64,000 bases of DNA from Asterias rubens (GCF_902459465.1 NC_047068.1:4774001-4838000); one strand, 5' to 3'; counted from the first letter of the stretch, positions 1,634 to 63,699 are shown. The notes: generated by a model not told the origin, from the letters alone. Made by a program: numbers and translations.

Positions 1634-2108
1634 TTAACATAAAGACAACATGAACAATTTACATGTTAAATTACTCTCTAAAGAAATGTTGTGTTTTGAT
1701 CTGCAAAAATAAACTAGAAAAACTTACATGTAGTTTGGTACAAATTTTTCATACAATAAAATGTTAGAAGACTTTGGTTACAACCATAGTTTTAAAAAAC
1801 CGAGGATGGCAGGGAAAATAGTCTAACCTCTATCTGATGAGAAAATGTAGCACTATATGAAGGTATATGACATACAGCTAAGCAACAAAAAAACAGATAG
1901 CCAAAAGTTGAATTTGTTGGAAACAAAGCAACCAATCATGGGCTGTATTTTCATTTTAAAAATTTTTGCAGAAATGTTAAATTTTTTCAAATTATCTGTT
2001 AAAACACGGTCGAAAGTTTGTTGATCACAGTTTGTTTATCAACTGTAGAAAGGTCGATAGATTAGAAATTCGAAGTAAATATATGAACACCGAAACAGTC
2101 ACCGTTAA

Positions 2109-9670: not shown

Positions 9671-12600
9671 ATGCCTGGAGGAGGATTAACTGAAACAGGT
9701 GAACTGTACTCCCCGTTGGTAAGTAAAATCATAGATAGAGGTGAACACGATAGGAATTTTGCTGAGTGAGTGAATGGACTTAGAAACTTTGACTGGCTTG
9801 ACTGGTGGTGGCAAGCCCTTGCACTTCCCTTTCCACTTCACATGTTCATTTGGGACATCAACTTTCCTTGCATCAACCATGCATCAAAAATTCAAGCATT
9901 TCCTTCCCTTGGCTAAAGTGGTGTGGAAATTGTTACATTTATCACTCAAAACACCATTGAGGAAATAGTGGATTAGTGTGAAGAAAAATGACAAAAAACT
10001 TACCGGATCCTTGAGCTAACGAAAGAGTAAAAAATGTCCCAGGTTGAAAATTTGTATATCATAATCAAGTGAGCCTCTAGCAAAATCATAAATACATATG
10101 TATGGACATGTTTGAATGTGCATGTATCGTAGCGTCATACGATATCGACCCTCATATGTTTTCAAACCCCGCGAGATTGTGCAAGCTCCACTGGTGACAG
10201 AAGCTATGCAGTTTACTTACGGTCTGTATTTTCATCAGGCTTAATCATGCTGAGAATAAAGTTTCCTGACGTTGGTTATGCTCAAATATTTATAAAATGA
10301 TTGATTTTTGGTACAAATCACTAGTGCATTATTATGCCAACATTCAAATGAGTCAAAGAAACATCATCTAACCTCAAAAGTTCAAAACAAAATTACTATC
10401 TGCAAGATTGAGTTTCATTCTGTTTTAGTCACTAGATGGATCACGTGAGGTGGTTACTATTTGGGATTCTATGGTGTGCCAATATGAGGAAAAAATTTAA
10501 GTGAATATGACAAAAAAATGTTTTTTGATTAACTGCATACTGCTGTAATAAATTCTGATAGCCTAAGTGTAAAAAATATTACGTCTCCATTAAAGAGAAT
10601 ATATCATAGATTGGTTTCTGATCTCCTGAAACCAAACATTACTGGTCTAAAATGGGGGAAAACGGATTGTTATGAAGTGTGTGTGTTTTAAGGGGGTGGG
10701 GTGTTTTACTACCATGCCTTATGATATCTCTCGATTCTAATATAGTAGCCATAATGCCGTGGGACAAAAATGTAATTAAATTTGTTAAGGTTTAATTGAA
10801 TAATATTTTTGATAGTTCCAAAAATGTCTTTTAATAAGTCCCAGAATCTTATATTTGAACGTTTTTTTGTGTGATGTGTTTTTCCCTATACATGTACGTA
10901 AGTAAGATAATCATGTGAAAGATCAATGCACAAGTAAGGATGATGTTGTACTTCCTGAAGCACAGAATCTCACATTGGTAGCCCTACTTTCTCTTTGATT
11001 TATGAGGTTCGGAGACAATAGCGAAACGAACCTTATAGTTCTTGGATATGATGATGAGATTGTCTGCAAATAAGAGGCAGACATCAATCCATTTGTGAGT
11101 GGGTCTGATCTGATGTTAATAAACGCTGATGATGTGTACTACTTCAACAGCTTTGCTGAAGTCCATTATATTTATAACTAGAAATATAGGATGCCGGCCA
11201 CTTCGTACCTTTGCCAACTGGGTCATTCCGTGTCAAATCACCCCCCAAAAAAGAAAATTTTAAACCCTACCCTCTTCAAATTGGCTCAAATTGGTGTATG
11301 GGGTGATTGTGGCTCAACAAGCTCAAATTTCAAATTTCAGCTCTATCCGATAAACGGTTTTCACGCTACGGCATGCTCTTTCTTGTTGATTTCGGTCAAA
11401 ATGCGCCTGACTGCCGATATTCAAACGACCACAAATTGGTAACCATTGGTTCAAAATTTGTGTCTTTGGAGAGGAAATTGCATAAGCTTTCCAAATCTGC
11501 CATTACTTTTTTTGTTGGAAGATATTTAGGTTTATTAACCTTTGACCTTTACTTTGACCTTGGATTTGACCTTGTGGATCATCTGAAGATGAACTTTGGT
11601 GAAAATTTACCCCAATATGTCTTCTCCACAATATAACAAAATTAGAGATATTCAGGCCTGATACTTCACGGAGGCAACGGAGGCGATTGCCTCCGTTGCC
11701 CCTTGCCACTGCCTTGGTTCCTAGTACTAGTGCTAGTAGTTGCGATAACGTAACTTTTATCTCCGGAGTCCCTCAGGGAACTGTTTTAGGGCCACTGTTG
11801 TTCTTGAATAAACATAAAAGACCTCCCAGAGTGACATCAAGTGTCAGATTATTTGCAGACGATCTCATCATATCCAAGAACTAAGGTTCGTTTCGCTATT
11901 GTCTCAGAGACGATAGCAGAATGAACCTCATAAATCTAAGAGAAATGCTCCAGTAGAAATTTACAATTTCCTCATAGGGTGCCCTTTGCGAAAAGAGAAA
12001 ATGCCTTGGTGCCCTATGCCCTTTGCAAAAACGAAGCGTACACCCCTGGATATAATATTTTACCTGGTCTACAAAGAGCTAAAAATAATAGCTCCCCTGG
12101 CCTAGCCCAGGTTGGACTTGTGCGTGGCATAGAATTTGTCCTACCAATGGGGCTATCCCTGAACCTGTGAACGGGGCAATGAAGAAATGTTTCTAGAATA
12201 AAGAGAAGTACCCAGTTACTTACGGTCTACCCATTCCTAGCCTACCTCCATGTATTAGTTCAATTAGCCTGTCTACATACCATGAGGAGTCCAACCTGGG
12301 CCAAGTATGCAAACTCTTTTAATTTGAGTGAAATAAGAAAAATGCATCACTCGGTCAATAATTAGAGCAAAATTTGTTTGCCTAATTTTCCTACACTTTC
12401 TTCAGGATACACGACACCCTCCCCGCCCAACTGTAAGGCAGGTTGATTCGACAACTCTGCTGTGCTGTGAAGTTTCAAAAGAATTCTGTTTGATAGAGCT
12501 TACAAGTCAAACATAAATTCTGAAACATCATGTAACATTATTCTGCCACCAGACGTAGCTTAGAAATAAAAAAAAACCAAACAAGTTGAATTTCGGTCAA

Positions 12601-15600
12601 ACATAGCAGTTAAAAAACTACTTGGTGTAAATAATCAATTGAAAGTGGACTATGTATGAAAGTGACTGTCTTAATTTATCAAACCATTAATAATTGTCTT
12701 AATCCAAACTTATTTGTCCTTGTTGATCTGCAGGTTGGGCTGATCTATGTGTTCAATCTCATCGTTGGCACTGGTGCCCTTACAATGCCATTGGCATTTG
12801 CGAGGGCAGGGTGGGCCATGGGTGGTGCTCTTATAACCATCCTTGCATTTGCCAGGTAAGCTAAAATGTTAATTAATTTCAACCCTGTGTAGTTGATGAT
12901 AATCTCAATAATCAAACCTGATAATGTTATCGTACACAAAGAGATTTAAAGATGTAAACTGTGTATTTGTGTAGCACTTTTGTTTTTAATTTGGAATGTT
13001 CTATTATTTTCAGTTTCCTAACAGCAACATTTGTAGTGGAGGCCATGGCGTCTGCTAATGCTGTAATAAGATTCAAACGTAAAGAGAAGAAAAGAGAGGT
13101 GAGACACTCTTAGTTTTTTTTATGTGCCTTGAAGTAGGTTGTCTCTTTCACCACATTTAATTACTGCAGTTCACTTTGTTATACTTGTAGACCTAACTGT
13201 TATCTAGGGCTATACTGTAGTTCACTTTGGGTATGTTCAGACAGCGTACTAAGTTAAACCCGAACCGGTTTAACTTCTACGAGCAGCAGGGGGTGGTCGT
13301 AAAAATAAAAACCCCTTGCGTTCAGACAGCACTGAGTTAAACCCGATACGGTTTATCTTTGGTTTTAAGAGGTCAAAGCAAACGCGGCCCCGTTACTCTA
13401 ACATCCTGTTTATTGGCCTGTTCATTGGTCACCGTGTGTTTACGTAATGATTACGGAGGTCAATGGGTTGTCTGTTGTGAGTTAAACCGGATGTGGTATT
13501 TTTTATTCTGTCCACACACAGTGTTAAAAGTTAAACCCGAAGCGGTCTAAAGATAAACCCCCTCCCTGGACGGTTTATCTTTTGTGGGTTGAACTCGATT
13601 CGGACTAACTTTAGAACCGTTCAGACACACTGAGTTGAACTCGATCGGTTTAAACCATGAGTTAAACCAACTTTAGTACTGTGTCTGAACGACCTCATTA
13701 TTATACTTGTAGGCCTAATTGTTATCTAGGGCTATACTGCAGTTCACTTTGTTATACTTGTAGGCCTAATTGTTATCTAGGGCTATACTGCAGTTCACTT
13801 TGTTATACTTGTAGGCCTAATTGTTATCTAGGGCTATACTGTAGTTCACTTTGTTATACTTGTAGGCCTAATTGTTATCTAGGGCTATACTGTAGTTCAC
13901 TTTGTTATACTTGTAGACCTAATTGTTATCTAGGGCTATACTGCAGTTCACTTTGTTATGCTTGTAGGCCTAATTGTTATCTAGGGCTATACTGTAGTTC
14001 ACTTTGTTATACTTGTAGGCCTAATTGTTATCTAGGGCTATACTGCAGTTCACTTTGTTATACTTGTAGGCCTAATTGTTTTCTAGGGCTATACTGTAGT
14101 TCACTTTGTTATACTTGTAGACCTAATTGTTATCTAGGGCTATACTGCAGTTCACTTTGTTATGCTTGTAGGCCTAATTGTTATCTAGGGCTATACTGTA
14201 GTTCACTTTGTTATACTTGTAGGCCTAATTGTTATCTAGGGCTATACTGCAGTTCACTTTGTTATACTTGTAGGCCTAATTGTTTTCTAGGGCTATACTG
14301 TAGTTCACTTTGTTATACTTGTAGGCCTAATTGTTATCTAGGGCTATACTGCAGTTCACTTTGTTATGTACTTGTAGGCCTGAAAAGCGGCAACAGTTGT
14401 GGTTTTGATAGAATATGCTCAACAGTGGTTAAATCTGTTCTTCCTTTCATTGCTGAACCTCTTAGCTACATCTTTAATCTGTCTTTTCTAACTGCTTCTG
14501 TTCCTCTCAACCTTAAAGTCGCTAAGATCATTCCTATTTTTTAAAACGGCAATAAGCAGGAATTCAGCAACTACAGGCCTATTTCTATCCTTCCTTGTCT
14601 TTCTAAAATCTTAGAGCGGCTTGTCCACAATCGCCTTTCTCAGTTCCTTTCCCACCATCGTATTCTTTTCGATCAGCAATATGGCTTTAGATCAAAACAC
14701 TCTACCGACATGGCCCTCATTGAACTTGTCGACAAAATTACCAATGCGTTCAGCAAAAAATTCTCTGCTATTGGTGTTTTCATTGATCTTTCTAAAGCTT
14801 TCGACACCCTTGATCACTCTATTCTTCTTTCCAAACTAAACCACTACGGTATCAGGGGTGTCCCGCTTCAATGGTTTGCTGATTACCTTTCTAACAGGTA
14901 CCAGTACACTACAGTAATGAGCTGTGACTCTAATCGTCAGAACATCCGGCATGGGGTGCCTCAAGGCTCTATCCTTGGGCCATTGCTTTTTTTGATTTAC
15001 ATCAATGATCTTCACAACTCTTCTTCGCTTCTGAACTTCACTCTTTTCTCCGACGATACAACCATCTTTTACTCTAGCCAGGACGTTACTTCCTTGATAG
15101 ACACTCTCAACTCTGAACTCTGCTCTATTTCTTTGTGGTTTAAAGCAAACAAACTTTCTTTAAATCACAATAAAACTAACTTTATTCTCTTTACCAAGTC
15201 AGCTCGTCCACTAGAGATTCTCTTGCCTCAACTGGTTATTGACAATATTCCCATCAACAGGGTATCTTCTGCAAAGTTTCTGGGCGTTACCATTGATCAA
15301 AGCCTTTCCTGGACAGACCACATTTCTTCTATTTCTAAAACCGTTTTCCGAAACACAGGCGTTCTATCTAAACTCCGCTTCTTTCTTCCAGCTACCTCTA
15401 TGCACTTACTGTACAACTCTCTTATTCTACCGTATTTGAATTATTGTAACATTGTCTGGGCGTATACCAGCAATAGTAAACTGAACGCCTTGTTTGTTAT
15501 CCAAAAAAGGGCCATTCGAATATGCACTTTTTCTCATTTCCGGGACCATTCTGCACCCCTTTTCGCGCGTCTATGCACCCTTACTCTTACTGACATCAAT

Positions 15601-18600
15601 AAACTTCAAACTGGCATTTTTATGTTCAAATATACTAATAATCTCCTTCCTCGAACATTTTCCACTTTCTTCACGTCGGTTCATGAAGTCCATGACTACT
15701 CAACCAGATCATGTAGGCCTAATAACCTGTTTCTTCCTTTCACCCGCACCCTGTACTCTAGCAACACCCTTTGATTCACTGGTCCACGTCTTTGGAATGC
15801 TAGGCCTATCTCTAGCAATTTAAGAACAATGCCGTCCGTGGGTCGATTCAAGATCTCTTACAAAAGAGTCCTCCTCTCCCACTATGTAACATAGCTTTTC
15901 TCTCCACTTATTTATTTTCTTTTGTCGTCTTCAGTTAGCCTGGTTTAACATTCTTTGTGTTTTTGTCATCAGCATTTTGTATTTTCATTGTGTAATTGTC
16001 TTGCCCTTGTTTCTTCTTCGATGTTTATTTGTTTGTTTGTTTGTTTGTTTGTTTGTTTTTGTTTGTGTGTTTTCTTGTCTGTATAAAGCCTCATGCTCTC
16101 ACTCCTGTCTTGTACATAGTTAATTCCTAGTTATTTATTTATTATCTGCTTTAAGATTATATTGTTTTTGTATAATTTAATACACTTTAGATTTGTTAAA
16201 TTTCTATGTACTGTTTAATTCTTACAATTGTTTTTTTTCTACAAGAGTATGGAATAAACGTTTATTGGAATTGAAATTGAAATAGGCCTAATTGTTATCT
16301 AGGGCTATACTGCAGTTCACTTTGTTATACTTGTAGGCCTAATTGTTTTCTAGGGCTATACTGCAGTTCACTTTGTTATGCTTGTAGACCTAATTGTTAT
16401 CTAGGGCTATACTGTAGTTCACTTTGTTATGCTTGTAGGCCTAATTGTTATCTAGGGCTATGAAGTGAGACACTTTAAGTTGTTTTTTTGTATCCTGAAG
16501 TAGGTTGTCTCTTTCACCACATTTAATTACTGCAGTTCACTTTGTTATACTTGTAGGCCTAATTGTTTTCTAGGGCTATACTGTAGGTCACTTTGTTATG
16601 CTTGTAGACCTAATTGTTATCTAGGGCTATACTGTAGTTCACTTTGTTATGCTTGTAGACCTAATTGTTATCTAGGGCTTTACTGTAGTTCACTTTGTTA
16701 TACTTGTAGGCCTAATTGTTTTCTAGGGCTATACTGTAGTTCACTTTGTTATACTTGTAGGCCTAATTGTTATCTAGGGCTATACTGCAGTTCACTTTGT
16801 TATTCTTGTAGGCCTAATTGTTTTCTAGGGCTATACTGCAGTTCACTTTGTTATGCTTGTAGACCTAATTGTTATCTAGGGTTATACTGTAGTTCACTTT
16901 GTTATGCTTGTAGACCTAATTGTTATCTAGGGCTATACTGTAGTTCACTTTGTTATGCTTGTAGACCTAATTGTTATCTAGGGCTATACTGTAGTTCACT
17001 TTGTTATACTTGTAGGCCTAATTGTTTTCTAGGGCTATACTGTAGTTCACTTTGTTATACTTGTAGGCCTAATTGTTATCTAGGGCTATACTGCAGTTCA
17101 CTTTGTTATACTTGTAGGCCTAATTGTTTTCTAGGGCTATACTGTAGTTCACTTTGTTATGCTTGTAGGCCTAATTGTTTTCTAGGGCTATGAAGTGAGA
17201 CGCTTTTAAGTTGTTTTTATGTATCCTGAAGTAGGTTGTCTCTTTCACCACATTTAATTACTGCAGTTCACTTTGTTATACTTGTAGGCCTAATTGTTAT
17301 CTAGGGCTATACTGCAGTTCACTTTGTTATACTTGTAGGCCTAATTGTTTTCTAGGGCTATACTGTAGTTCACTTGTTATACTTGTAGGCCTAATTGTTT
17401 TCTAGGGCTATACTGTAGTTCACTTTGATATGCTTGTAGGCCTAATTGTTATCTAGGGCTTTAAGTTGAATGTTTTCTGTAAGAGCAGCTCGATCCCTTG
17501 TGTTATGATGTACTAAAAGTACAGATATTTTCATCAATATAATCATTTTTGTTACATTTAAAATTTTACCAATTATATTTGATACTCTTTGCAACAATAG
17601 GAAGAAACTGTAATTTAGTTAACTTGCGGATACAACCATGTGTAAACCTCTTATGTGTGAGTGTTGGCTCTGAGAAGAGCCGGTTTGGTCTTGACATTTC
17701 GCACAGTATACACAGTACAGTATACTCTGCTCTTTGCAACAAATTGAGCTTGATGCAAGGTAGTAAAATCTTACATTTAAATACTTTTAAGTACTGCAAA
17801 TGTAAGATATTAATGCTTTATTATCTCAAGATTTACTGTTGGTATTTCTTATCCTTTATTAAGCTTGAAGATTCCTCAAGTGATTCAAATGAAGAAATGA
17901 ATCGTGACTACCCTCATGAAGTTGAGAGTGAAGAGAAACAAAGTTTGCTTCATCCTCCGCCGCTTCATCCTCGTGGTGAGTCTACTTTATTTCACAGGGG
18001 GAGGGGGGTTATAGTGCAAGGATCACCTTGGAAAAGTGGTATCTTTCCCTCCATTCCTTGGACCCAGTTTAGAATTCCACTGAAAACCAGAGGCTCATAA
18101 TCACAAAGTGGGTTTTATTTAGATCCTGCCTGATTGAATGGGTTTCTATGGAGTTGCAGAATTATTGGATTGATACAAGATTACAAGTATGGGACAGTGT
18201 TACATACAATTGCCAAGCACAAAGATTAATTTAACTCATAAACATCTTATATGAATTTTTGTTTTACCAGATAAAGATAAGACACATCCAGACTACTTTG
18301 ATATTACAGAAAGAGTTGAAATGGCAACGATGGCTTCACTGTTCTTTAACAAAGGTATTATAAAAAAGTATTCATAAATACCTCAGACAGTTTCGCTATT
18401 CCTATTGGTGGAGAGCGCGTCACATGGGGGTGTATAAACCTTTGATAATGACCAGTGTTTATAACCAGCTGCGCGCAAGATTATCACGCGGAACGCAATT
18501 CATAGCTAAAGTGAGTGCGTTATCTAAGCTTGCGCGCGTAATCTTAGCGCGCGCACATACACACAACCCACGCGCATCGAACAGATTCTTCACAAAGTAA

Positions 18601-21600
18601 AAAAAAATAATAATCAAACCTTGAGTTTTCATGTGTTCAAGTGTCTATAATTGTATTTTTTAAACATTTTTTAACAAAAGGGTATGAATGGGAATCAAAG
18701 AGTAGTGACGCGTTCTTAAACGTTCGTTTAAAACTTTGCAGGGTCGTTGCCGTACGATAAAGGCCCTTGCCTTCGGCTTGGGCCTTTATCACACGACCGC
18801 CGGCTTTAAACGGCCGTTGAAGAACTTGTCGCTACCCTTTTATTCCCTTATTCATAAAAATCTCCGACAGTTTCGCTATTCCTATTGGTGGAGGGCGCGC
18901 CCTGGGGGGTGTTTAAACGGTTGATAATGACCAGCTAGAGCTTTGTTTATGCGCACAAAGCATCTCCGAAAACTGTCTTAGTCATAACAATGCAACACAC
19001 GCACGTACGTACTGAGCTCAAGCATGTCGGAAAACTGATAAGTTTTACAGAGTTTCTTACTTTATTACGCCTTTTAACCAAAAAGACATTTATGAATAGG
19101 AATAAAAGAGAAGTGACTGACTTGCAAGGTCGTTGCCGTGCGATAAAGGCCCTCGCCTTCAGGCCTCGCTTTGGCTCGGGCCTTTATCACATGGCACTGA
19201 CCCTGCCGGTTTTAAACGCCCTTTTAAGACCTCGTAGTATGACAAAGGTTTTACATCCAAGGGAGGTTAGACTTTACCATTTCCTTCTGGACATTACATT
19301 ATTGCAGAAAGACAAATTTGTTTTTAATTCAAAATATAAACAAGATCATAGAAAAATGTTTGCCTTGGTGTGGTGATGAATGCATTATTGTGGCAGTTAT
19401 AGTTGTTTGTCTTGGTGTAGTGATGAATGCAGTATTGTGGCAGTTATAGAGAAGTGACTGACTTGCAAGGTCGTTGCCGTGCGATAAAGGCCCTCGCCTT
19501 TAGGCCTCGCTTTGGCTCGGACCTCAAACAACCATTCCTTCTTTCTTGTACCAACAAATCGCTTTGAAATCAATGAGGTGTGCAAACAACTAAACAATGG
19601 TGTAAGCTGTGGCTTTGATGGAATTAGTTCAACTGTGGTGAAGTCTGTAATTTCTTTTATCTCTTGGCCTCCTGCCCATATTTTCAATCTGTCCTTTCTG
19701 TGTGGCTCGGTGCCTTCTCAGCTCAAAATTGCTAGAGTCACTCCTATCTTTAAAAGTGGTGATCGCCATGACTTGCGGAACTACCGCCATATTTCAGTTC
19801 TTCCTTGTTTCTCTAAAATTCTTGAAAAACTTGTCTACAAACGACTCTTTAAATTCCTTTCTGACTTTCATCTTCTTTATGATTTTCAGTTTGGTTTTCG
19901 TAGCAAATTCTCGACAGATATGGCGCTAATTAAACTTGTTGATCATCTTAACAACTCTTTCACTGAGAAAATGTCTACTATTGGTGTCTTTATAGACCTT
20001 TCCAAAGCTTTTGACACCATTGACCATAGCATTCTTCTCTCAAAATTAGATCACTATGGAGTGCGTGGTGTGGCTAACCAATGGTTCGCTAATTATCTGT
20101 CTGACAGGAAACAATATACAGTTTTCAAAAACTGTGATTCCCCTCTAAAGACAATTGACGGCGGTGTTCCACAAGGCTCCATTCTTGGACCTTTACTGTT
20201 CCTTTTGTATGTAAATGATCTTTATCATTGCTCATCCGTCTTGTCTTTTATTCTATTTGCTGATGATACCACTATCCTTTTTTCTCACTCTAATATATCT
20301 TCTTTAAGCAATACCATCAACAGGGAACTAAGTCTGGCCTCGTCTTGGTTTAGATCTAATAAGCTGTCACTCAATTCGAGCAAGACCAAATACATGTTTT
20401 TCAGCAGGACTCGCAACGCTAACGACAACTTCACCATCAGTATTAATGATACTCCAATCGAACAGGTTCACTCGACAACGTTTTTAGGAGTTTTAATTGA
20501 TGATAAGCTGACCTGGAAAGATCACATATCCTCTGCTTCGAAAATTGTTTCTCGCAACACAGGCGTTTTGTCTAAGCTTCGTTCCTTTCTTCCCACACAC
20601 ACATTACTTTCTCTCTACAACACTCTTATTCTTCCCTATCTTAACTATTGTAATATTGTTTGGGCTCATTCAAGCACTAGCAAACTTCATTCTCTGTTCT
20701 TAATCCAAAAAAGGACTATCCGTATCGCTTCTATGTCTCATCGTCGTGACCATACCGCGCCCTTGTTTGCTAACTTGAACACACTCACACTCACGGATAT
20801 CAACAAACTTCAAACAGCCATTTTCATGTTCAAATACACAAACAATCTTCTGCCCCACACTTTCTCCAATTACTTTCCTTCTGTCAGCAACACGCACCTT
20901 TATAACACACGCTCCTGTAACAATCTCTATATCCCTTTCGCACGTACTTCTTACACAATGAACACTCTTCGCTATCATGGGCCCCGCCTCTGGAATTCAA
21001 TTGATAGGCGAATTCGCTCGCAGTCCTCTGTTGGTCGATTCAAAGCCTCCTTCAAAAAACACATTGTCTCCCATTATGTAACATAGTTGTGATTCTGTCA
21101 TTATTTTGGTTTAGTTCTATCGTCGTGGCCGTCTTGTGGTATTTGAATTGTTTGTTTGTTTGGTTTTGTTTGAGGTGTTAGTTTGAGGTGTTTGTTTGTC
21201 TGGTTGGGTGTTTTGTTTTTGCGTTTCGTTTATCCGTCTCGTTTTGATGTTATTGTTGTTACTATACGCTTTGTTTTATAATTTAAATGATCTTATTACC
21301 TTCCTTTGTTTTGTAAAAGGCATCCCAGCTTACAAGCTTTGCTTTAATGGGCCATGCCTCCATACAGTTTTCTGTCTTGTAACATCCTATTGTTTGTATT
21401 TGTATATTGTGTTTGTATGGAAATAAATGTTGATTGATTGATTGATTGATTGATAGTTGTTTGTCTTGGTGTAGTGATGAATGCAGTATTGTGGCAGTTA
21501 TAGTTGTTTGTCTTGGTGTAGTGATGAATGCATTATTGTGGCAGTTATAGTTGTTTGTCTTGGTGAAGTAATGAATGCATTATTGTGGCAGTTATAGTTG

Positions 21601-25930: not shown

Positions 25931-28581
25931 CGTTCCATCAAACTCCAAACTTGTGTAACATCTTAGTTTGTATTTTGTAATTTAAATGTTTATGACTTCC
26001 ATATGAACTCCAATTATTCTGAGTACATGTGCACTAAAATCCTTTCGAATAGCTTGCCCAAATTTGATGAATTTAGTAGCGTGTAAAAAAAGTTAATTTT
26101 TACAGTGTTGGGCATTCCAACCATATCAGGGTTGATGCTTGTTATAATGAATTCTGATAGATTGGCATCTGGTTTGCAGCAAAATAGATGGGTAGCATTT
26201 GTTCTACAAATCATGATTGTTTGGTGCCTCTTTCATTTTCTTATCTGTATTTAATGTCCCTTGAATTTTTGTGGTATTTTACTTGTATACATACACGTAT
26301 TCCCCATTGGCTTTATTTTATGAAATCAAATCAAATCTTGATAGAAAAATTGAATATGTATGAACTATACATCTATACTATAATAGCGCTTAAATCGCAT
26401 GGGCGCCGCCATTGTTGTTTTGGGCGCCGCCATGTTGTTTTCACGTCAAGTGGTGCCCGCACCCTGTTAAAATGATGCGTCCTGGGGTAAATTTCGGGGT
26501 ACCCGTGGGTTGGGGTCATGTGTTGTTTGTGACGTCACAGTCAAAGCGCGAGCGTGTAGTAACTTTGGGATTGAGGGCAGGCGTCCTTTGTGATGTCACA
26601 GTCACAGCGCCAGCGTCCAGTAACTTCGCGCGTACATACAGTGAAGAACAATGCATTGGATCGAGGCACAACGACATGACGAAGGCTGGTGGGGGTTATT
26701 AGAGCACGTTGTGGGACAGTTAGAAGGAAGGGGCATGCAGTGTGGTATGTCTGTTGCAATGGGGCGAAAAAATAAACTGGACAAAGAAGAAAAATACACG
26801 AAAGGGAGAACCACCCGACTGGCGGTACCCGCGCGGAATGGGGAAAGTTATGGGCCGGCAAAAAGTGCAAAGAACAATTCACGGGCGGGAAGGAGGCACG
26901 GGTTAGATTTGGGACAGGGACAGGAGGAAGGGGCACAAAGTGGTACGTCTGTGGAACGGGGGACGGGGGGAACAGCAAACATAAAATGACGGGGAAAATA
27001 AACAGGGCTGGGGTATGGAATCCTAAAAAACAAAAGGGACTATCATGATATGGGACATGGGACAGGAAAATATTAAACTGAATGGGGAGGGGGGGGGGGG
27101 GGAATCAATCCCATAAAACGGGAAAGAACCACAAACGGGACCTGTGTGAAACTGGAAAATATGAGTTATGGGCAAACAGTGACAAGCAAAGAACAATGCC
27201 AATGCATGGGATCGTGGGGACGGGAGGCACGGGTTAGACATGGGACGGGATATGGAAGGGGCACACGGTTGGACAGGGAGTTGGGGGAAAAAATGAATGG
27301 GGCTGGTGAGGGGGAAAAAAGAAAAGGGACTTGAAAACGATACAGGACAGGTAAATAATAAATTGAACGGGAACAAAATCAACAAAACGGGATATAAACG
27401 GGACTGAAAAGAAACCACTATCGGGACCCGCTGGAAACTATGTATGGGATCGACAAATAATGCCGAAACAGGAAAAAACGGACAAGTATACGATTTCACA
27501 AAGCACTAAGATTTGTCTTAACTTTGGATAGGTGGTTTGCCACAGTGATTTGTATTGTGACCCTGCCCAGCCACTAACCCTCCCGTGTACACAACGCTAC
27601 ACTTGCAGCATTTTATACGAAGAGCTTTCTTCGCTAGTGTAATGAAAGGGAGGATGTCAAGGTGAATTTTGTTTGTTTTCAATTTTGTTCTTACTCTTCA
27701 TTTTTATTTGTAGATTCTCTTGTTCTTTTTTACTTTGAGTCCGACTTATAAAATATTCAAAGTAGGTCAAGAACTCAAGACTCTACATGATAATAGAGTA
27801 GGATAAGTGCACTTTATAACGAGGCTGTTTATCACATCGAACCTTTGCTGGTAAAATTATTCTGTGCAAAGCTGAACTAAATTGTAATAATAATATCCAA
27901 CTTGGCTTAGTCAGATGATATTTTTAAAAAGATGGAAGTATTTTGCAGACGTTCACATGAATCAATAGTTATTGAAAAAAAGGTTAAATGAGAAGAGTTT
28001 ATTTATTTTTCTCATTGAAAGTAAATTAAGATTATGTAATAAATAATATATGTGATACCTTTTATGATATAGACACAATTACTGCGACAAAACTGACATG
28101 TTACAATAAAGAAACTTTTCAATTAATTGTATCGTGTAAAAAGAATTTCTTTATTTACAAATGTACATTATTTACTTTTTACAATGCAATTACTCTTTAA
28201 ACAGCGCATTAATAAAACTAAACATTTTGGGGTGATTTTTTTTCAAGCTTTTTTTGTCTGGTACTGCCCTATTTGTGGCAGTGATAACAGTCGCTTGCAT
28301 TTTCTAACTCAAGGTAGTTCATGTAGAAACAAAACATAAAGACTTGCATTACAAATGGACAACATTCATGCTTGGATGAACATCATTATGCTTTCCGTCT
28401 TATTTAAATGTCTTTTTACATCTTTCAAGAAAGTCTAAAAGCAAAAGAGGTTTATAAAAACATCCCAACAAATCTGCCCATCCTTTGTACTTGTTTACCA
28501 TTGTTCTTGAGAACGGAACATTTACGAAAGATTAATATATTATGGTTTTACAAATTGGCCTAACACCTCACAACCCTGCAA

Positions 28582-37500: not shown

Positions 37501-39831
37501 AACATATTTTGTGTGGATATCGGTACTTTATAAGTTGATTTGGGTATACAAGTGTGTGAATGATTTCAAAGCAGAACCATAATGCCAATATTTAATTATG
37601 TACACACAAAAACTTTCAATACAAATCAGACTTCAAAACCTTAATGAATACAAACAAGTTGTTTACATTTTTCTCTGGGTGGAGGTGTAGCTGCACAGGG
37701 TGTGTCTTGCTTAGGGGGTCTCTCTAGCATTGTGTACCCAACACATGCAGGATGGGAGAGGGCTGGATCAAAATAGTCAGCCGCTTGGGAGTCAACTTCA
37801 ACATGTTCCACCATACGACCAAACATAACAGGGGAATGTGCTTCAGGACGGAACTCAATGATGTCAGTACCAACGGATTCTTGGTCATCATCTTTTGGAA
37901 AGGGTGGCCTCATCAAAGAAAATTCTGATCAAAAAGACAAATTAAATGAGATAAATAAGACAGAGAAAAACAATGATGTGGTTCTTTAAAAAGTATTATA
38001 ATCTTGTGAAAGTTGAGGTACAAACAAGTCAATGGCACAGCAAACATTTCAACCCTTCAGTTTGTTCTAAAAAATGTAAATCAAATTGTTATATCAGGTT
38101 ACGTAGTTGTGATAACGCAATCCTCCTCCCGATGGCGATCGCAACTAGTGTTAACGGTAAACTTGCCCTGCCCCGCCCCAGCAAAGTTGCCACCAGCTGC
38201 TCGAATATGAATAATTTAAAATGGAGGTTCAAGTAACTCATAATCATATACACCAAATAGATTAGAGTAGACCCAGTAACTGGGGCACTGTAAGTGATAG
38301 GCCTAATCATTTAAATTTTGAAATTTATCTCAAAAAAGTAAAACAAAATAATAAAAAAAATTGGTACAGCGTGCCCCAGTTACTGAATACTGCTGGATCT
38401 ACAAACTAGATGTTACCACCAAACACAACAGAGTTTTATTATTACAACAGACATTATCAGCCTGATCAGACAGAGTAACACTAACCAGCTTACTAAACAG
38501 AGGACAGAGTAAAAAAATCAGTAAGTTAAAGCCATTATACCCTTTCGGTACAGAAAAAAAGAAAAAAAGTTCACAGATTAACAAATAATTTACAGGGTTT
38601 ACAGAAGGTAATGGTGAAAGACTTCTCTTGAAATATTGTTCCATGAAATGCTTTACTTTTTGAGAAAACATTAAAATAATATAAATTCTTGTTAGGGAGA
38701 ATTACGGATTTATTTTAAACACATGTCATGACACGGCGAAACGCGCGGAAACAAGAATGGGTTTTCCCGTTATTTTCTCCCGATTGACCGATTGAACCTA
38801 AATTCTCACAGGTTTGTTATTTTATATATTAGTTGTGATACACAAAGTGTGGGTCTTGGACAATACTGTTTACCGAAAGTGTATAATATTAATGGCTTTA
38901 AAGTAACATCATTTTAATAAACAGTGGATGGTGTAAACTTGGTCAACTGTTTACAGTTGAGTTGTCTTTCGGAGATCTAGTCTGAAGTGTCATGACTGTC
39001 GACGCAGGGTTGTCTTTTCTTAAACTAAGTGTTATTTCTGAGTTTTGGTTTGGATCCCCCACGTACATGCTTTGAAGTTTGGGGTCCTACTAAAAGCCGA
39101 CAACAAGCCGAAAACTTAACTTTCACGGAAAACGGTCGGACGCCATCTTAGCTTAAAATCGTGTTTGGACCAGTCCATTATGATGCGGGTAAGTCAGATT
39201 TAGCAATAGAGGGCGGGCGTCATGTACTGTGCACACTGCAGTGAAGGTCTCCACATGAAGCCCGCCCTCTGTTGTTGACAAGTGCTAAATCTACCCGTAT
39301 CATAATGGTCTGGTCCAAACACGGTTTTTAAGCCAAGATGGCGTCCGACCGCTTTCCGTGCAAGTGAAGTTTTCGGCTTGTTGTCAGCTTTTAGTTGGAC
39401 CCCAAACTTCAAAGCATGTACGTCCGTGGGGGATCCAAACCAAAACTCAGAAATAACACTTAGTTAAAAAATACACACTTTTCGTGAAGTTTTTCCATTA
39501 AATTTATGTTTTATATTACAGAACACATATAGTTCTAATATATTTATGGTTTATTTGCCATTTTTTGAGGTATTTAAAACTGGTTGGCGGCGTGTTGGTG
39601 GCGCTCTGGACTTGTTGTCGGCTTGTTGTCGGCTTTTAGTAGGACCGGAAGTTTGTGTGGACGGGTGTCCGCATACTGGGCAACACCTGAAAGGCTTATT
39701 TCAAATTCGACGGTACGGGTATCGGTTACTAAGTTGTATATTATATTAGTTTATATAGCCAGTAAATGACACGTACCTTTGCATATTTCATCCCATATCT
39801 TCACTTCGTGCTTTTGCCCGATAATAGACAT
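28582..39831 (-). CDS. IQCK: IQ motif-containing protein K, 7 coding exons, 287 aa
   Basis: complement(join(28582-28818,34689-34773,34935-35012,36390-36442,36945-37042,37667-37924,39777-39831)), 864 nt, GT-AG. Motifs IWDEICKE, PREYLEHYIFPVLLP..QAKKEKCFERKR, PRPPLPLSL, IQSFFRGYKVR and IQELRQWQ match IQCK. Confidence 0.92.
28964..34448. repeat. 54-bp minisatellite in the last IQCK intron, split by a LINE
   Basis: Unit GTCGACAAGGGTTTTTAACTAACAGAGCCCCCATATAGGGTAACTGTGTAACAT, about 27 copies at 28964-30446 and about 1.5 copies at 34367-34448. Confidence 0.95.
30447..34366 (-). mobile_element. Apparently full-length L2/CR1-group LINE (APE endonuclease plus RT), inactivated
   Basis: One frame from 33916 to 30569 with in-frame stops at 33596-33598 and 30881-30883. 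APE motifs LTETW, GDFN and SDH; RT motifs NYRPISNL, DLSAAFDTVDH, GVPQGS and YADD. 15-bp TSD TCGACAAGGGTTTTT at 30432-30446 and 34367-34381. Confidence 0.95.
38530..38897. mobile_element. Kolobok-like TTAA MITE
   Basis: TTAA|AGCCATTATAC ... ATGGCT|TTAA. A second copy starts at 51652. Confidence 0.65.
39020..39467. mobile_element. Foldback (long palindromic) element in IQCK intron 1
   Basis: Arms of about 200 bp beginning AACTAAGTGTTATTTCTGAGTTTTGGTTTGGATCCCCCAC, with the reverse complement ending near 39467. Confidence 0.8.
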
Positions 39832-52285: not shown

Positions 52286-55200
52286 ATGTCGGAGTTATCA
52301 ACCGAAACTGAAATGACCTTTGAGCGACCCAGCAGCAGATATGAAAATCTGTCCAGCCGTTTCCTTCAGAAAGGTCGCAATTTTAGGCGACAGTATGCCC
52401 ATCTTTATGCAGAGCGTTTGTGCAGTATGTATACTCGGTTGACAGAGACAGCCAACAGAAAATGGGGTAATGATAACAAATTGTTGTAATCAAAATTTAT
52501 TTATTTACTCACAAAAATTGTGTCTAGAAATAGATGTCACTGTCTGCAAAAAAGTTGCTAATATTATATAATGTTTTTTTAAAACAAGAACTCTTTCTAT
52601 GGGCAACCATTCAAATAACTCTTTTAACCAGATAACAAAAAAGAACAAATTAATGTGCACATTTTTCCCTGACTTCATGTGCCTGATTGAAATGAGATTC
52701 CAGTCAGTGAGTCTTGGTTCTAGCCATAAGGCCCTAAAAACAGCCATGTCAGCCAAAGTCATAGTCCCAAATGACAGCTGAGGTTGTAGGCCCAAATGAC
52801 AGCCATGTCAGCCGAGGTCATAGGCCTTAATGACAGCCATGTCAGCTGAGGCTATAGGCCCCTTATGAAATGCATGTCTGGCGAGGTTATAGGCCCTTAT
52901 GAGAGCCATGTTAGCTGAGGCTATAGGCCCCTTATGAGATGCATGTCAGCCGAGGTCATAGGCTCTAATGACAGACATTTCCGCCGAGGTCATAGGCCCA
53001 AATGGCAGCCATGTCAGCCGAGGTCATAGGCCCAAATGACAGCCGAGGTCATAGGCCCTAATGACAGCCATGTCAGCTGAGGTCACAGGCCCTTAGCCAT
53101 GTCAGCCGAGGTCATAGGCCCAAATGACAGCCATGTCAGCCGAGGTCATAGGCCCTAATGACAGCCATGTCAGCTGAGGTCACAGGCCCTTAGCCATGTC
53201 AGCTGAGGTCATAGGCCCTAATGACACCCATATCAGCCGAGGTCATAGGCCCTAATGACAGCCATGTCAACCGAGGTCATAGGCCCAAATGACAGCCATG
53301 TCAGCCGAGGTCATAGGCCCAAATGGCAGCCATGTCAGCTGAGGTCATAGGCCCTAATGACAGCCATGTCAGCCGAGGTCATAGGCCCAAATGACAGACA
53401 TTTCAGCCGAGGTCATAGGTCCAAATGGCAGCCGTATCAGCTGAGGTCATAGGCCAAAATTGCAGCCATGTTAGCCAAGGTTTAGCAATCAACTGTGCGT
53501 GAAAACAGTTCTCTCTATAGAGGAACAATAAATCCTGGTGCTTTAGAGAGAATCTTTGTTCTCTTGGCTTTGTCAAGTAAAGGATTCTTTACGCCAGTAC
53601 TTTTTCTTTCTAGAAAATTTTATAAATCCTTTTTTGTTTGTCCTTTTTAGGAGAGTCAGTTTTGATGCGCAAATTGTTTGAACTGAAGGCAGATGAGGAG
53701 TGTTGCGTGATTGGAACCTTATTTAAAAGTATGGAACTCAAACCCAGCATTCTGAAAGAAATCAGCGAAGATGTAAGATGATTTCATCAACCTTGCCTTC
53801 AATCCCCTCCCCTCCCCTAATAAAAAGGTCTGCTGTGTGTCCACATTGTACAAGCAGCAAACACCTGAAAATGACTTAAGGGTTGTGGACCAAGTCCAAG
53901 AACCAAAGGCGCATAATTATTAAGTAAGAACAAAAGTAACATCTCTCCCTTTCCCATATTCCACTTCCATGGTACAGTAGAAATCTGTTGTGTTGTATCT
54001 TACTTAGCAAGGGGGATAGCTAAAGGATTGGGTCTTTTCTCCTAAGAAAGAGTTTCTTCATCTTTGCAACGTTATTCTCTCTATAAGTTATTTCCATTTT
54101 TAAATCTTCTCTTGTTTTTAGCACAACATGGTTCCGCAGCCGAAAAGGGACAAGTACATAGCAGATACAGACACATTGATTCTAGAAGATGAACTCCAAA
54201 GAATTGTTCTCCTTGGAAATATTGATGTCCAAAAGGCTGTTACAGGTAGGCTACAAAGTATTACAGCCACTTAGAATTTAAAAACATTTTTGTTACAAAC
54301 TTTTGGGAAATTGTTTTGAAATTCTAGTGTTATAGTTATGTGAGAGATGACGTGGTTTTCATCATTCCATCTTGCTCCCTTTATAGGTGTAGTTATAGTT
54401 TTATATGGTCACGAGAAAGATGACATGGTTTTCATCATTCCATCTTACTCCCTTTATAGGTGTAGTTATAGTTTTATACGGTCACGAGAAAGATGACATG
54501 GTTTTCATCATTCCATCTTGCTCCCTTTATAGGTGTAGTTATAGTTTTATACGGTCACGAGAAAGATGACGTGGTTTTCATCATTCCATCTTGCTCCCTT
54601 TATAGGTGTAGTTATAGTTTTATATGGTCACGAGAAAGATGACATGGTTTTCATCATTCCATCTTGCTCCCTTTATAGGTGTAGTTATAGTTTTATATGG
54701 TCACGAGAAAGATGACATGGTTTTCATCATTCCATCTTGCTCCCTTTATAGGTGTAGTTATAGTTTTATATGGTCACGAGAGAGATGACGTGGTTTTCAT
54801 CATTCCATCTTGCTCCCTTTATAGGTGTAGTTATAGTTTTATATGGTCACGAGAAAGATGACGTGGTTTTCATCATTCCATCTTGCTCCCTTTATAGGTG
54901 TAGTTATAGTTTTATATGGTCACGAGAAAGATGACGTGGTTTTCATCATTCCATCTTGCTCCCTTTATAGGTGTAGTTATAGTTTTATACGGTCACGAGA
55001 AAGATGACATGGTTTTCATCATTCCATCTTGCTCCCTTTATAGGTGTAGTTATAGTTTTATATGGTCACGAGAAAGATGACGTGGTTTTCATCATTCCAT
55101 CTTGCTCCCTTTATAGGTGTAGTTATAGTTTTATATGGTCACGAGAAAGATGACGTGGTTTTCATCATTCCATCTTGCTCCCTTTATAGGTGTAGTTATA

Positions 55201-58200: not shown

Positions 58201-61200
58201 TCATCACCTTATGACCCTTCAGCTTCTACTTGATTTAATAACCGGTCAGCTAGGGGGTCCTGAGGAGCAGGAGATGTATTCAAAGGTTGTACGAGTCATT
58301 GTTGCCGGTAATAGTCTCAGTAAGGACACACAGACTGCTGATGCACTCAATACGGTTAGTAGAATACACATTTAACCCCCTCCAATCACTAGCTCCAAGT
58401 TAGTTGACTTGACTTTGTGCAAATTAAATATAATTGAAGTCGCTTTAACTTGATATGATGTGGTCATGTAAATTGTTACTAACCAAATACAGTTGACTCC
58501 CTTTATAACAAGATTGTGGGAACTGTCCAAATTACCCTATAATGGGGCATTGTTATAAGAGAATAGTTAAACAAAAAAACACATAGCAGAAATGATGTTT
58601 TGGACTTTAGAATGTACTCTTTATTATAAAGCAGAACCTTTTTAGAACAGTGCTCTTTCTAACCACTGTAACCTGTTTTCAAGAACTCTTCGGTACGGTA
58701 AACTTACAGGTAGAAAAGCATTATATTGGAGATTTCCTCCCAGTTAGATTGACAAATGTCAAATAAACAACAGATAAAGAAAGGAGAATGTTATAAAATG
58801 CTTTAACAACAACTTTTTGTTAACCTTTTCTTTCCTTAGGCCAAATACTTGAGTCGTAAGGTGAAAGCAGGCACAGTAGAAGCTGTCAAGGCATTGGATG
58901 ATATATTTGCTCAACTTGCTGTAAGACATCAGTTTCTTTCATTTAAAGACAGGGTACACTATTGGTAATTATCAAAGACCAGTCTTCTCACTTTGTGTAT
59001 CCCAAAATAAGCATAAAATAACACATGTGAAAATTTGGGCTCAATTATTCGTCAAAGTAAAAAAAAAAAAAAAAGACAAAACACCTTTGTTGCGTAGAAA
59101 CTTGTGCTTTTAGATATGACTGAGATTCAAATTGTTTTAGTGAAAATTACCCCGTTCTATAATACTACACTACTTCAAAGGGAGTTGTTTCTCACAATGT
59201 GCTATATTATCACTGACTCTCTAGTGTTTCTTACCAAGTAAGTTGTATATGGTTATTAACTTGAAGAGTGACTACCAAAAGTATACCCTGCCTTTAAGAT
59301 TCAACTTGTTGAATATTCTCTATGCATAATGGCTCAGCACATACTGTACATGTATGGTTTGTTAATCTTTGCAAACTACTAAGGAAGTTTATTTATTTAT
59401 TTATTTCCTTTATTTACCCAGGGTGAGCCAAATATTCTCTATGCATAATGGCTCAGCACTAATGTACATGTATGGTTTGTTAATCTTTGCAAACTACTAA
59501 GGAAGTTTATTTATTTATTTATTTCCTTTATTTACCCAGGGTGAGCCAAATCAGTAAACAAACTGGTTTCCATTTGGGCCCTGCGAACAAACTAACATGT
59601 TAAAAGTAAAAAGTTCATGTTGGTGTGATGCAATTTTTTTTGGGTTTAGATCCTATTTATTATAATAATGAGTAGGGTAGATGGCCTTAGCTTTCGATCC
59701 ATATCGGAACCTTCTTCAGATTATTTATTATAAGAACTTATAATAATCATGTGTTAATGAATAAACAGTAACAATAACGAGCAGTGAAAGTTCAAGACCT
59801 TTCTGATGCGACCTCCTGAAATCGCATCTTCCTAAATTAAAAGCTACAATACTTCTGATAGAATGGTTTTCTTTTTCATTTTTCTTTTGACAGAGTTGTG
59901 TTGCTGTTGATGTGATGCCTGGTCCAAATGATCCCTCATTCTGCTTCTTGCCTCAGCAGCCCCTGCATCGATGTATGTTCCCCCAAGCCTCTGTTTATCC
60001 CACAATGCGCTCTGTCACAAACCCATATGAAGCGTGTGTTGATGGTGTTAGGTAGGATAAAACAGTTGCAATGTTACATCCTCAAAATGTACTATACATA
60101 TCTGTTCATATGGAAAGCAGTTTGTTAACTTAAAATTTTAAATTATGTAAAATCCCTGTTGTTAGCAATTGAACTTGTTTTTGTAGTGATTTGTTAATTT
60201 GGACTGCTAATGTATCACTCGCTTTCAGATTTCTAGGGACATCTGGGCAGAACATAACGGACATATTCCAGTATACTGATATGGAGGATGGCATGGAGAT
60301 ATTGGAGGCGACTCTTAAAGCCTGTCATGTAGCACCCACGGCTCCAGATACATTAGGTTTGAAAGCTCTTTAGATTATAAAGCTATTCATTCACAAAGTG
60401 TGGGAAAACAATGTTAAATTGGATGTGCAAGTCTTGAATGTATCAAACACATCTCAAACAAGTCAAATCTTTTAAAAACTTTTTCTTTTGGACAACAAAT
60501 CTTGAAAATAACAAAATACCAATAACAATTTGATGTACAAGTTTGTAATGCAACTAAATTGTTAAAATTTTTAATAAAACAAAAATTGATTTTAGGATGA
60601 GGATGCTTATTTGTTTAGAAACCAATTTGCCAATCACACCTGTTTCATGGTAATTTTGTGATGGCTTCTATACACTTTGGATTTAATCCCTAACATTCAC
60701 TTCTGTCTACTACAGCTTGCTATCCTTACTATGATGAAGATCCATTCATTGTGTCCGAGTGTCCACACGTCTACTTTGCTGGCAACCAGAACAAATTCCA
60801 AAGCAAAATCTGGAAAGGTATTAATTTAATTGGTTTTCTTAAGAACTGTTTTTAGCAATTTTATTTTAAATATCGGGCCAGTAAACTATTTATTTCGAAA
60901 AACTATTTGTTTTAATAGGTGTTATTGGGCGGTTTGGAGTAGGGTATGGGAGGCAAGAACACGCAATGGAGGCAAATTCCTTTGTACCTTCTGAAGAATT
61001 ACACTCTGGCTTGAATAATGTTAGTTATTGTCCACTGTCTTGGAATTGAATAGTTTTCAAAAATGTAATAAGTAGTTTTGAAGTTCTAGTAGTAAATGAT
61101 GTTTTTTGTTGCACCTTTTATTACCATGTTTCTGTGTCTGTCTTTGTAATCACAGGTCAATCTGGGCAGAAGGTTCTACTGATAACAGTTCCACAGTTTA

Positions 61201-63294: not shown

Positions 63295-63699
63295 GTAAGA
63301 GAACATTTTTCTTTTGTACCAAAAAAACAAGTAGGCCTAGGTATGTTTTCCAGTGTTTTTCGCGAGTGAATTTTTTGTCCCTTTCCTTTGCTTTGATTTT
63401 GTGTGTGGAGGTGTGTCCCGCTGTTGTTTTTATGAAACTTGTACTAAAGTGACGTACGTGTACACAAAAATACAAGCTACAAAATCCTATTTAAACTTAT
63501 TCTCCTTCACTTTAGTTAGTCTTTATTCACAATTCAGTCCAATTTGTTCATAAATTTAAGGTTATGCCTACAGCCTTACACTTACAGGTCCATGCATTGC
63601 ATGTGTGCGGGTAAGACTCTAGTCTAGTGTAAGAGTTATTTACACTTTTTTACTCTTTCCAAACCAAACCTAATCTTGCCAAAATTGGGCTCGGAAAAG

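Follow-up and report, generated by a model that had tools for sequence, protein, structure and literature searches.

When a Tc1/mariner transposon is excised, its scar consists of TA together with 2-4 nt from one end of the element (PMC6943129, PMC7913693). A characteristic 6-bp scar is known for Minos (PMC3386967, PMC10992017), and TACTGTA is the canonical footprint of the Sleeping Beauty type (PMC6943129). Here we describe two insertions of similar form, both giving the octamer TAGGCCTA, in a long interspersed nuclear element (LINE) of the starfish Asterias rubens. This LINE, copy A, lies in a stretch of 64,000 nucleotides (GCF_902459465.1, NC_047068.1:4774001-4838000; G000:C7:4774001-4838000), called the window below. 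The statistics rest on the window, on 57 further loci that were fetched, and on pattern counts across the whole genome (417.6 Mb, 150 contigs).

Copy A (14382..16282, + strand; other features are unstranded unless marked +) is a 5'-truncated, dead LINE, recognised by the Pfam domain RVT_1, by family copies at 78-95% identity and by its insertion boundaries. Its reverse-transcriptase open reading frame (ORF) spans 14710-15774 (RVT_1, E=9e-23), and a TGA stop stands at 15772-15774 where the family has CGA. Because of the 5' truncation and this stop, copy A is a pseudogene. The two octamers, at 15714..15721 (site 1) and 15801..15808 (site 2), are 87 bp apart and near its 3' end, at the positions reported in an earlier reading of the window, the first-pass annotation. 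We aligned copy A with up to 19 same-family LINE copies, 78-95% identical and drawn genome-wide. The family reads GATCCCG|TAATAACC at site 1, where copy A has GATCATGTAGGCCTAATAACC, and GGAATGCTA|TCTCTAGC at site 2, where copy A has GGAATGCTAGGCCTATCTCTAGC. The six bases are missing at each site in every spanning family copy, and at site 2 in 17 of 18 spanning paralogous alignments; therefore both octamers are private insertions of copy A at TA. Site 2 is a clean gain of 6 bp with flanks otherwise unchanged, and site 1 shows two added substitutions (CC to AT) immediately to its left, one of them at a CpG.

The first-pass annotation had arrived at these sites by comparing copy A with a second LINE, copy B (19512..21086, + strand), which has neither insertion. 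The gaps that separate the two LINEs in that comparison are real, but the copies are not the sisters they were taken for. Their identity is ~80% along the 3' end that aligns and 63-72% when longer stretches are compared, and since it reaches only 63-80%, copies A and B are by sequence members of different families. Because they are not close relatives, the pair alone cannot tell which lineage changed. Whether the family consensus already has Arg-Pro at both sites was a test set beforehand, and the spanning family copies proved to be without the 6 bp that encode it. The preserved reading frame, to which the first-pass annotation had drawn attention, is incidental and without functional meaning: the length is that of 2 + 4 bases, and copy A was already a pseudogene.

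The same change has happened elsewhere. An all-against-all comparison of the window and the 57 loci gave two further independent TA-to-TAGGCCTA events, both at unlinked loci. The first, L022:764, lies in a ~150-bp tandem repeat of an unplaced contig, where a single unit has TCATGTAGGCCTAATGGG; the four sister units covering this position are without the six bases, and two of these read TCATGTA|ACGGG. At L058:1505 and L053:1505, which belong to one subfamily of miniature inverted-repeat transposable elements (MITEs), the sequence is CACCATGTAGGCCTAATG, and four other copies or arms have CACCATG|TAATGAC. All four polarised events turn TA into TA-GGCC-TA relative to paralogues, by exactly +6 bp. 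Few of the small non-tandem insertions could be polarised, and in this set TA-X-TA forms predominate. One more change of TA, in the 3' untranslated region of a LINE copy (L010:1808), gave TACTGTA; this +5 bp insertion is missing in 13 of 16 paralogues and is a canonical Sleeping Beauty-type excision scar. TA insertion hotspots also exist, because one TA in the abundant TTAA|AGGCAG MITE (…TTTTATGCA|TA|TGTTGAG…) bears different, independent insertions of 6-8 bp in four copies (L059:462, L002:911, L015:2390 and L015:308: TTACATG, CACATA/CATATG, TAAATG and one longer).

Genome-wide, TAGGCCTA was observed 27,776 times against ~4,100 expected (~6.8x), and TACATGTA, which has the same geometry of TA, palindromic tetranucleotide and TA, 91,620 times against ~12,700 (~7.2x); the reversed control ATGTACAT occurs 38,898 times. 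These expectations were scaled up from the dinucleotide shuffles (100) used for the window. We masked satellites and ascertained sites in a sample of 241 kb; there the two octamers exceeded an order-3 Markov expectation 9.8x (TAGGCCTA) and 6.5x (TACATGTA). This count of TA-NNNN-TA words against a Markov model had been proposed by the first-pass annotation, and it placed both at the top of the 256 such words and also of all palindromic 8-mers. Among the 65,536 8-mers, higher scores were reached only by homopolymers, by the (AAAC)n microsatellite and, ahead of TAGGCCTA, by one word pair, GTCCCGCT/AGCGGGAC. Genomic TAGGCCTA sites are dispersed over all chromosomes in unrelated contexts, with a mean spacing of ~1 per 15 kb.

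The window itself contains 30 copies of TAGGCCTA (0.63 expected): 26 in a 51-bp satellite, the two in copy A and two solitary ones, at 38298..38305 and, in unique sequence, at 63332..63339. The former has two weak paralogues only (73-74%), neither of which differs by 6 bp in length. For TACATGTA the count is exactly nine (1.94 expected), at 1725..1732 and starting at 10889, 34516, 34800, 41367, 59347, 59465, 62641 and 63107; the pair at 59347 and 59465 goes back to a single event, which a 118-bp tandem duplication has copied. Both tallies agree with the first-pass annotation, which had listed TAGGCCTA at 38298, at 63332 and in most 51-bp units, and nine TACATGTA against a rough expectation of about two. 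Its central proposal, a recurrent gain of 6-bp units at TA from which palindromic octamers result, is supported by the four independent events, the genome-wide excess and the top rank of both words among TA-N4-TA words. Each insertion is private and sits at TA only; as a class, the insertions recur, are uniform and are strongly over-represented.

The sequence around the octamers is not random. Among 100 genomic TAGGCCTA sites, counted by eye, a purine (R) stands at -1 in 75% and a pyrimidine (Y) at +1 in 69% (background 50%), and G precedes TA in 41% of half-sites as against 20% of all TAs in the sample. This R-TA-Y logo indicates a palindromic target-site preference around TA. The flanks of TACATGTA show the same trend, more weakly. 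The two octamers are often fused through a shared TA: TACATGTAGGCCTA (CATG-GGCC) was observed 681 times against ~163 expected and TAGGCCTAGGCCTA (GGCC-GGCC) 103 times against ~25, both 4.2x, and the CATG self-fusion TACATGTACATGTA 4,533 times against ~269 (17x), with TA assumed to take up 7.5% of positions. Because the heterologous and the GGCC self-fusions are equal at 4.2x, the fusions argue for re-use of scar TAs as targets rather than for slippage of a hexamer; scar TAs sit in the favoured G-TA / TA-C context. The 17x of CATG probably includes slippage. Triple fused scars, TACATG-TAGGCCTA-CATGTA, appear from overlapping matches on both strands at G000:C2:7749338-7749357 and C2:15135876-15135895. 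The 14-mer CATGTAGGCCTAAT has 86 genomic occurrences in unrelated contexts against ~3 expected by base composition (our own estimate); its reversed control was not found in the genome, but that control contains CpG. Eleven of 30 inspected contexts of the 14-mer are preceded by TA and thus read TA-CATG-TA-GGCC-TA.

What could make such octamers? We consider it slightly better than an even chance that they are Minos-like 6-bp excision scars of a TA-targeting cut-and-paste transposon with ends GG..CC, most simply GGCC..GGCC, because the addition at TA is fixed, the TA is duplicated, the flank preference is palindromic and the products are targeted again. The element would insert at TA and duplicate it. 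On excision, the transposase would cut the non-transferred strand a few bases inside, so that each flank keeps TA and terminal bases as a 3' overhang. If four bases are retained, as in Minos, and these are the palindromic GGCC, the overhangs would be self-complementary and could be ligated to TA-GGCC-TA, a net gain of 6 bp. The scar product is essentially one invariant form, and its invariance would be best explained by this geometry, because four palindromic terminal bases would give self-complementary 3' overhangs. TACATGTA would be a like scar from elements with CA..TG or CATG ends, presumably another family, because its tetranucleotide differs. That a single LINE copy has two scars at a distance of 87 bp may reflect a local hop; the chance of a second scar within 87 bp is ~1%, by our own estimate from the genome-wide spacing. 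The satellite, in which the preferred G-TA / TA-C context recurs at dozens of TAs, may draw elements to the region.

Several results weigh against excision scars. Transposon footprints had been suggested by the first-pass annotation and are still the best explanation, with the maker itself a matter of inference: its search for TA-flanked GG...CC or CA...TG elements, run on ~250 kb (0.06% of the genome, so a weak negative), gave no such source for either scar type. The TA|CA..TG candidate MITEs in this sample turned out to be inner parts of TTAA-flanked MITEs, and the sole family with GGCC ends prefers T at -3, not R-TA-Y, while site 2 (GC|TA|TC) is not a TWA target (W, A or T). Partial-scar words that error-prone end joining would leave are not enriched in the sample (TAGGTA 53 observed vs 72 expected, TAGGCTA 16 vs 13, TACAGTA 45 vs 42), and TACATA reaches just 1.24x expectation, although the lack of shorter variants would agree with cohesive 4-nt overhangs. 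Of the three events detected free of ascertainment, two, site 1 and L022, share the full 14-mer CATGTAGGCCTAAT, which is present in ~0.3% of genomic TAGGCCTA; each of them differs from its family in one flank, toward the 14-mer, which could mean a longer pasted patch and not a bare +6. Finally, read-level confirmation of both insertions failed: the Logan contigs of four runs are short unitigs dominated by LINE paralogues, none spans the locus, and loose ends at 15710 and 15806 are insertion-free family sequence.

Other repeats and words met in these searches were set aside. The region 39064-39420 of the window (TA|CATG..CATG|TA), tried as a source, is the inner part of a foldback whose arms reach 39021-39466 (~445 bp, long near-perfect arms, TTAA/TAA flanks). 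The dominant MITEs in the sampled loci are TTAA-flanked and piggyBac/Kolobok-like (TTAA|AGGCAGTGGACAC…, TTAA|AGCCATTATACAC…); one family, TTAA|AGGCAGTGGACACTATT…, is ~380 bp long and present in ~1/3 of loci, another, TTAA|AGCCATTATACACTTTCGGTAC…, is matched at least 1,689 times by a 12-mer from its interior, and examples lie at window 2110, L002:604-978, L050:2303-2678 and L010:2120-2482. Short TA-bounded palindromes starting with GG, as micro-derivatives of a source element, were looked for in the sample and none was found. As a hybrid CA+CC scar, TACACCTA was rejected, since it comes entirely from a 73-bp minisatellite. CAGGCCTG (19 sites) was rejected as a scar as well, being the palindromic terminus of other repeat families; it is ~8x over-represented in the sample and forms the ends of a ~176-bp MITE (L036:1061-1236, L045:2811-2994 and window 11653) with apparent 6-bp target duplications TATACA and TATCTT. 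An origin as P-nucleotides from a hairpin was dismissed, since the added bases do not mirror the flanks.

Of the other explanations, a dedicated or unknown TA-specific break-and-join activity survives best, and we still think it unlikely. A domesticated transposase or a nuclease, for example, would cut and fill at TA, with GGCC and CATG as fixed products and no mobile element. The uniformity of the scars, the lack of enriched partial forms, the want of a resident source element in 250 kb and the very large numbers of sites (27,776 and 91,620) all suit such an activity. However, we know of no enzyme that adds a fixed tetranucleotide, and a fixed addition is most simply explained by fixed transposon ends. 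Moreover, the +5 TACTGTA scar shows that ordinary Tc1-type excision happens in this genome. Cut-and-paste families may stay low-copy while their scars accumulate.

Somewhat less probable is templated repair, by polymerase-theta end joining or short-patch conversion, in which GTAGGCCTAAT was copied from the satellite to site 1 and then from site 1 to site 2 via the microhomologies TG and TAAT/TA. Copy A lies within the satellite (left block 13701..14381; right block, in three runs, 16283..17460), which is older than the LINE insertion and carries GTAGGCCTAAT in most units and TAGGCCTA 26 times. Satellite units read TGTAGGCCTAAT, 12 nt identical to the changed site 1, and the two substitutions beside site 1 move toward CATGTAGGCCTAAT, as does a flanking C to T in L022. 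Yet in the satellite the octamer is preceded by TTG instead of ATG, and the 3.3-kb L022 locus holds no other TAGGCCTA. The same product is found at unlinked loci and at 27,776 sites in unrelated contexts, whereas insertions of this kind normally vary in length and content. The satellite also records how copy A arrived: its insertion point was within the TAGGCCTA of one satellite unit, and the event left TAGGCCT as a 7-bp target-site duplication at 14375..14381 (left) and 16283..16289 (right), and its 3' end reads …GGAATTGAAATTGAAA.

A scan of ~250 kb for TA-flanked terminal inverted repeats (TIRs) beginning with GG returned one real family, a 122-bp MITE (GGCCGTGTCCGAATTGG…CCAATTCAGACATGGCC; L032:2036-2157, G000:C1, ~13.603 Mb) with TIRs of ~35 bp and at least 274 terminal matches genome-wide. 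That this Tourist-like family left the octamers, by imprecise excision or by microhomology deletion between its ends so that one GGCC remained, seems improbable to us. The family does end exactly in GGCC..GGCC, about half of its ends are directly TA-flanked (TTA|GGCC), and the target was TAA in 3 of the 4 polarised insertion events. Its flanks, however, are of the form S-T-W-A|GGCC (S, G or C), of PIF/Harbinger or Tc4 type, and the predicted TWA-GGCC-TWA words are not enriched (AAGGCCTT, 4 vs 10.7 expected). T..A flanks surround TAGGCCTA in only ~4% of the 100 sites, and T stands at -1 in 16% of half-sites. The target at site 2, GC|TA|TC, has no TNA, and a TAA target would give +7, not +6. In 13 complete copies of this MITE the middle bases of the flanking triplets agree in 5, about chance, an oddity if these triplets are a true 3-bp target duplication. 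Least probable is that no process is at work and that the octamers reflect chance, compositional bias, selection for a binding motif or an assembly artefact: the Logan contigs were too short and too rich in paralogues to give read-level support for the two sites, and words of alternating pyrimidine and purine are generally common (the control ATGTACAT, 38,898), inflating TACATGTA, but TAGGCCTA is not such a word, four insertion events are polarised, 0 of 100 shuffles reach the observed window counts, and selection is not expected on insertions in dead repeats.

If the octamers are excision scars, TAGGCCTA would document, as a fossil record, no fewer than 20,000 fixed excisions, the work of a family now rare or extinct, and past cut-and-paste activity, normally traceless, could be dated and mapped with it. 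Throughout the genome such scars would, in addition, repeatedly supply +6 bp (two-codon) insertions of defined sequence and create new TA targets. Their uniformity suggests one particular geometry of the transposon ends, with self-complementary overhangs of four bases. Should there be no source element, the process would itself be unknown biology. More broadly, though we hold this to be doubtful, starfish genomes may record, as the two 8-mers in greatest excess, invariant insertions of the form TA-(palindromic tetranucleotide)-TA in their tens of thousands. Their makers would be either transposons whose four-base ends are self-complementary, so that excision gaps close by sticky-end ligation, or a host TA-specific cut-and-fill activity that needs no mobile element; in both cases the process would be recurrent, sequence-specific and in-frame and would re-target its own products. 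A literature search for TAGGCCTA or TACATGTA as transposon footprints gave nothing relevant. New here are the polarised evidence for the TAGGCCTA scar class, its count and uniformity, the flank logo and the fusion with TACATGTA.

Two other features of the window were seen. A 34-bp tandem repeat at 52771-53481 has units with TCATAGGCCCTAATGA, which closely resembles TAGGCCTA but contains an additional C. An ORF at 25169-25930 matches the amino-acid transporter family Aa_trans (E=4.6e-9) and is probably a host-gene exon.

The two octamers share their geometry and R-TA-Y bias, but they differ in their tetranucleotide, and TAGGCCTA is ~3.3 times rarer than TACATGTA and less given to self-fusion (4.2x vs 17x). 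Small size, a non-tandem nature, microhomology at the borders and, in the window, a possible template close by are features that the insertions share with polymerase-theta templated ones; unlike those, they recur as an identical product at unlinked loci, are always 6 bp and have no local template at L022. Sleeping Beauty and Tc1 scars (TACAGTA / TACTGTA) resemble the octamers in the TA duplication flanking terminal bases and in the palindromic flank preference. However, they keep three bases, CAG or CTG, whereas four, GGCC, are kept here, and the shorter variants are not enriched. There is also a close likeness to Minos, which targets TA and leaves the duplicated TA plus four bases, a net +6 bp; a 4-nt stagger is probable for the octamers. 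Excision of Minos gives either CGAG or CTCG, as its overhangs mismatch, whereas the scars described here are one invariant palindrome.

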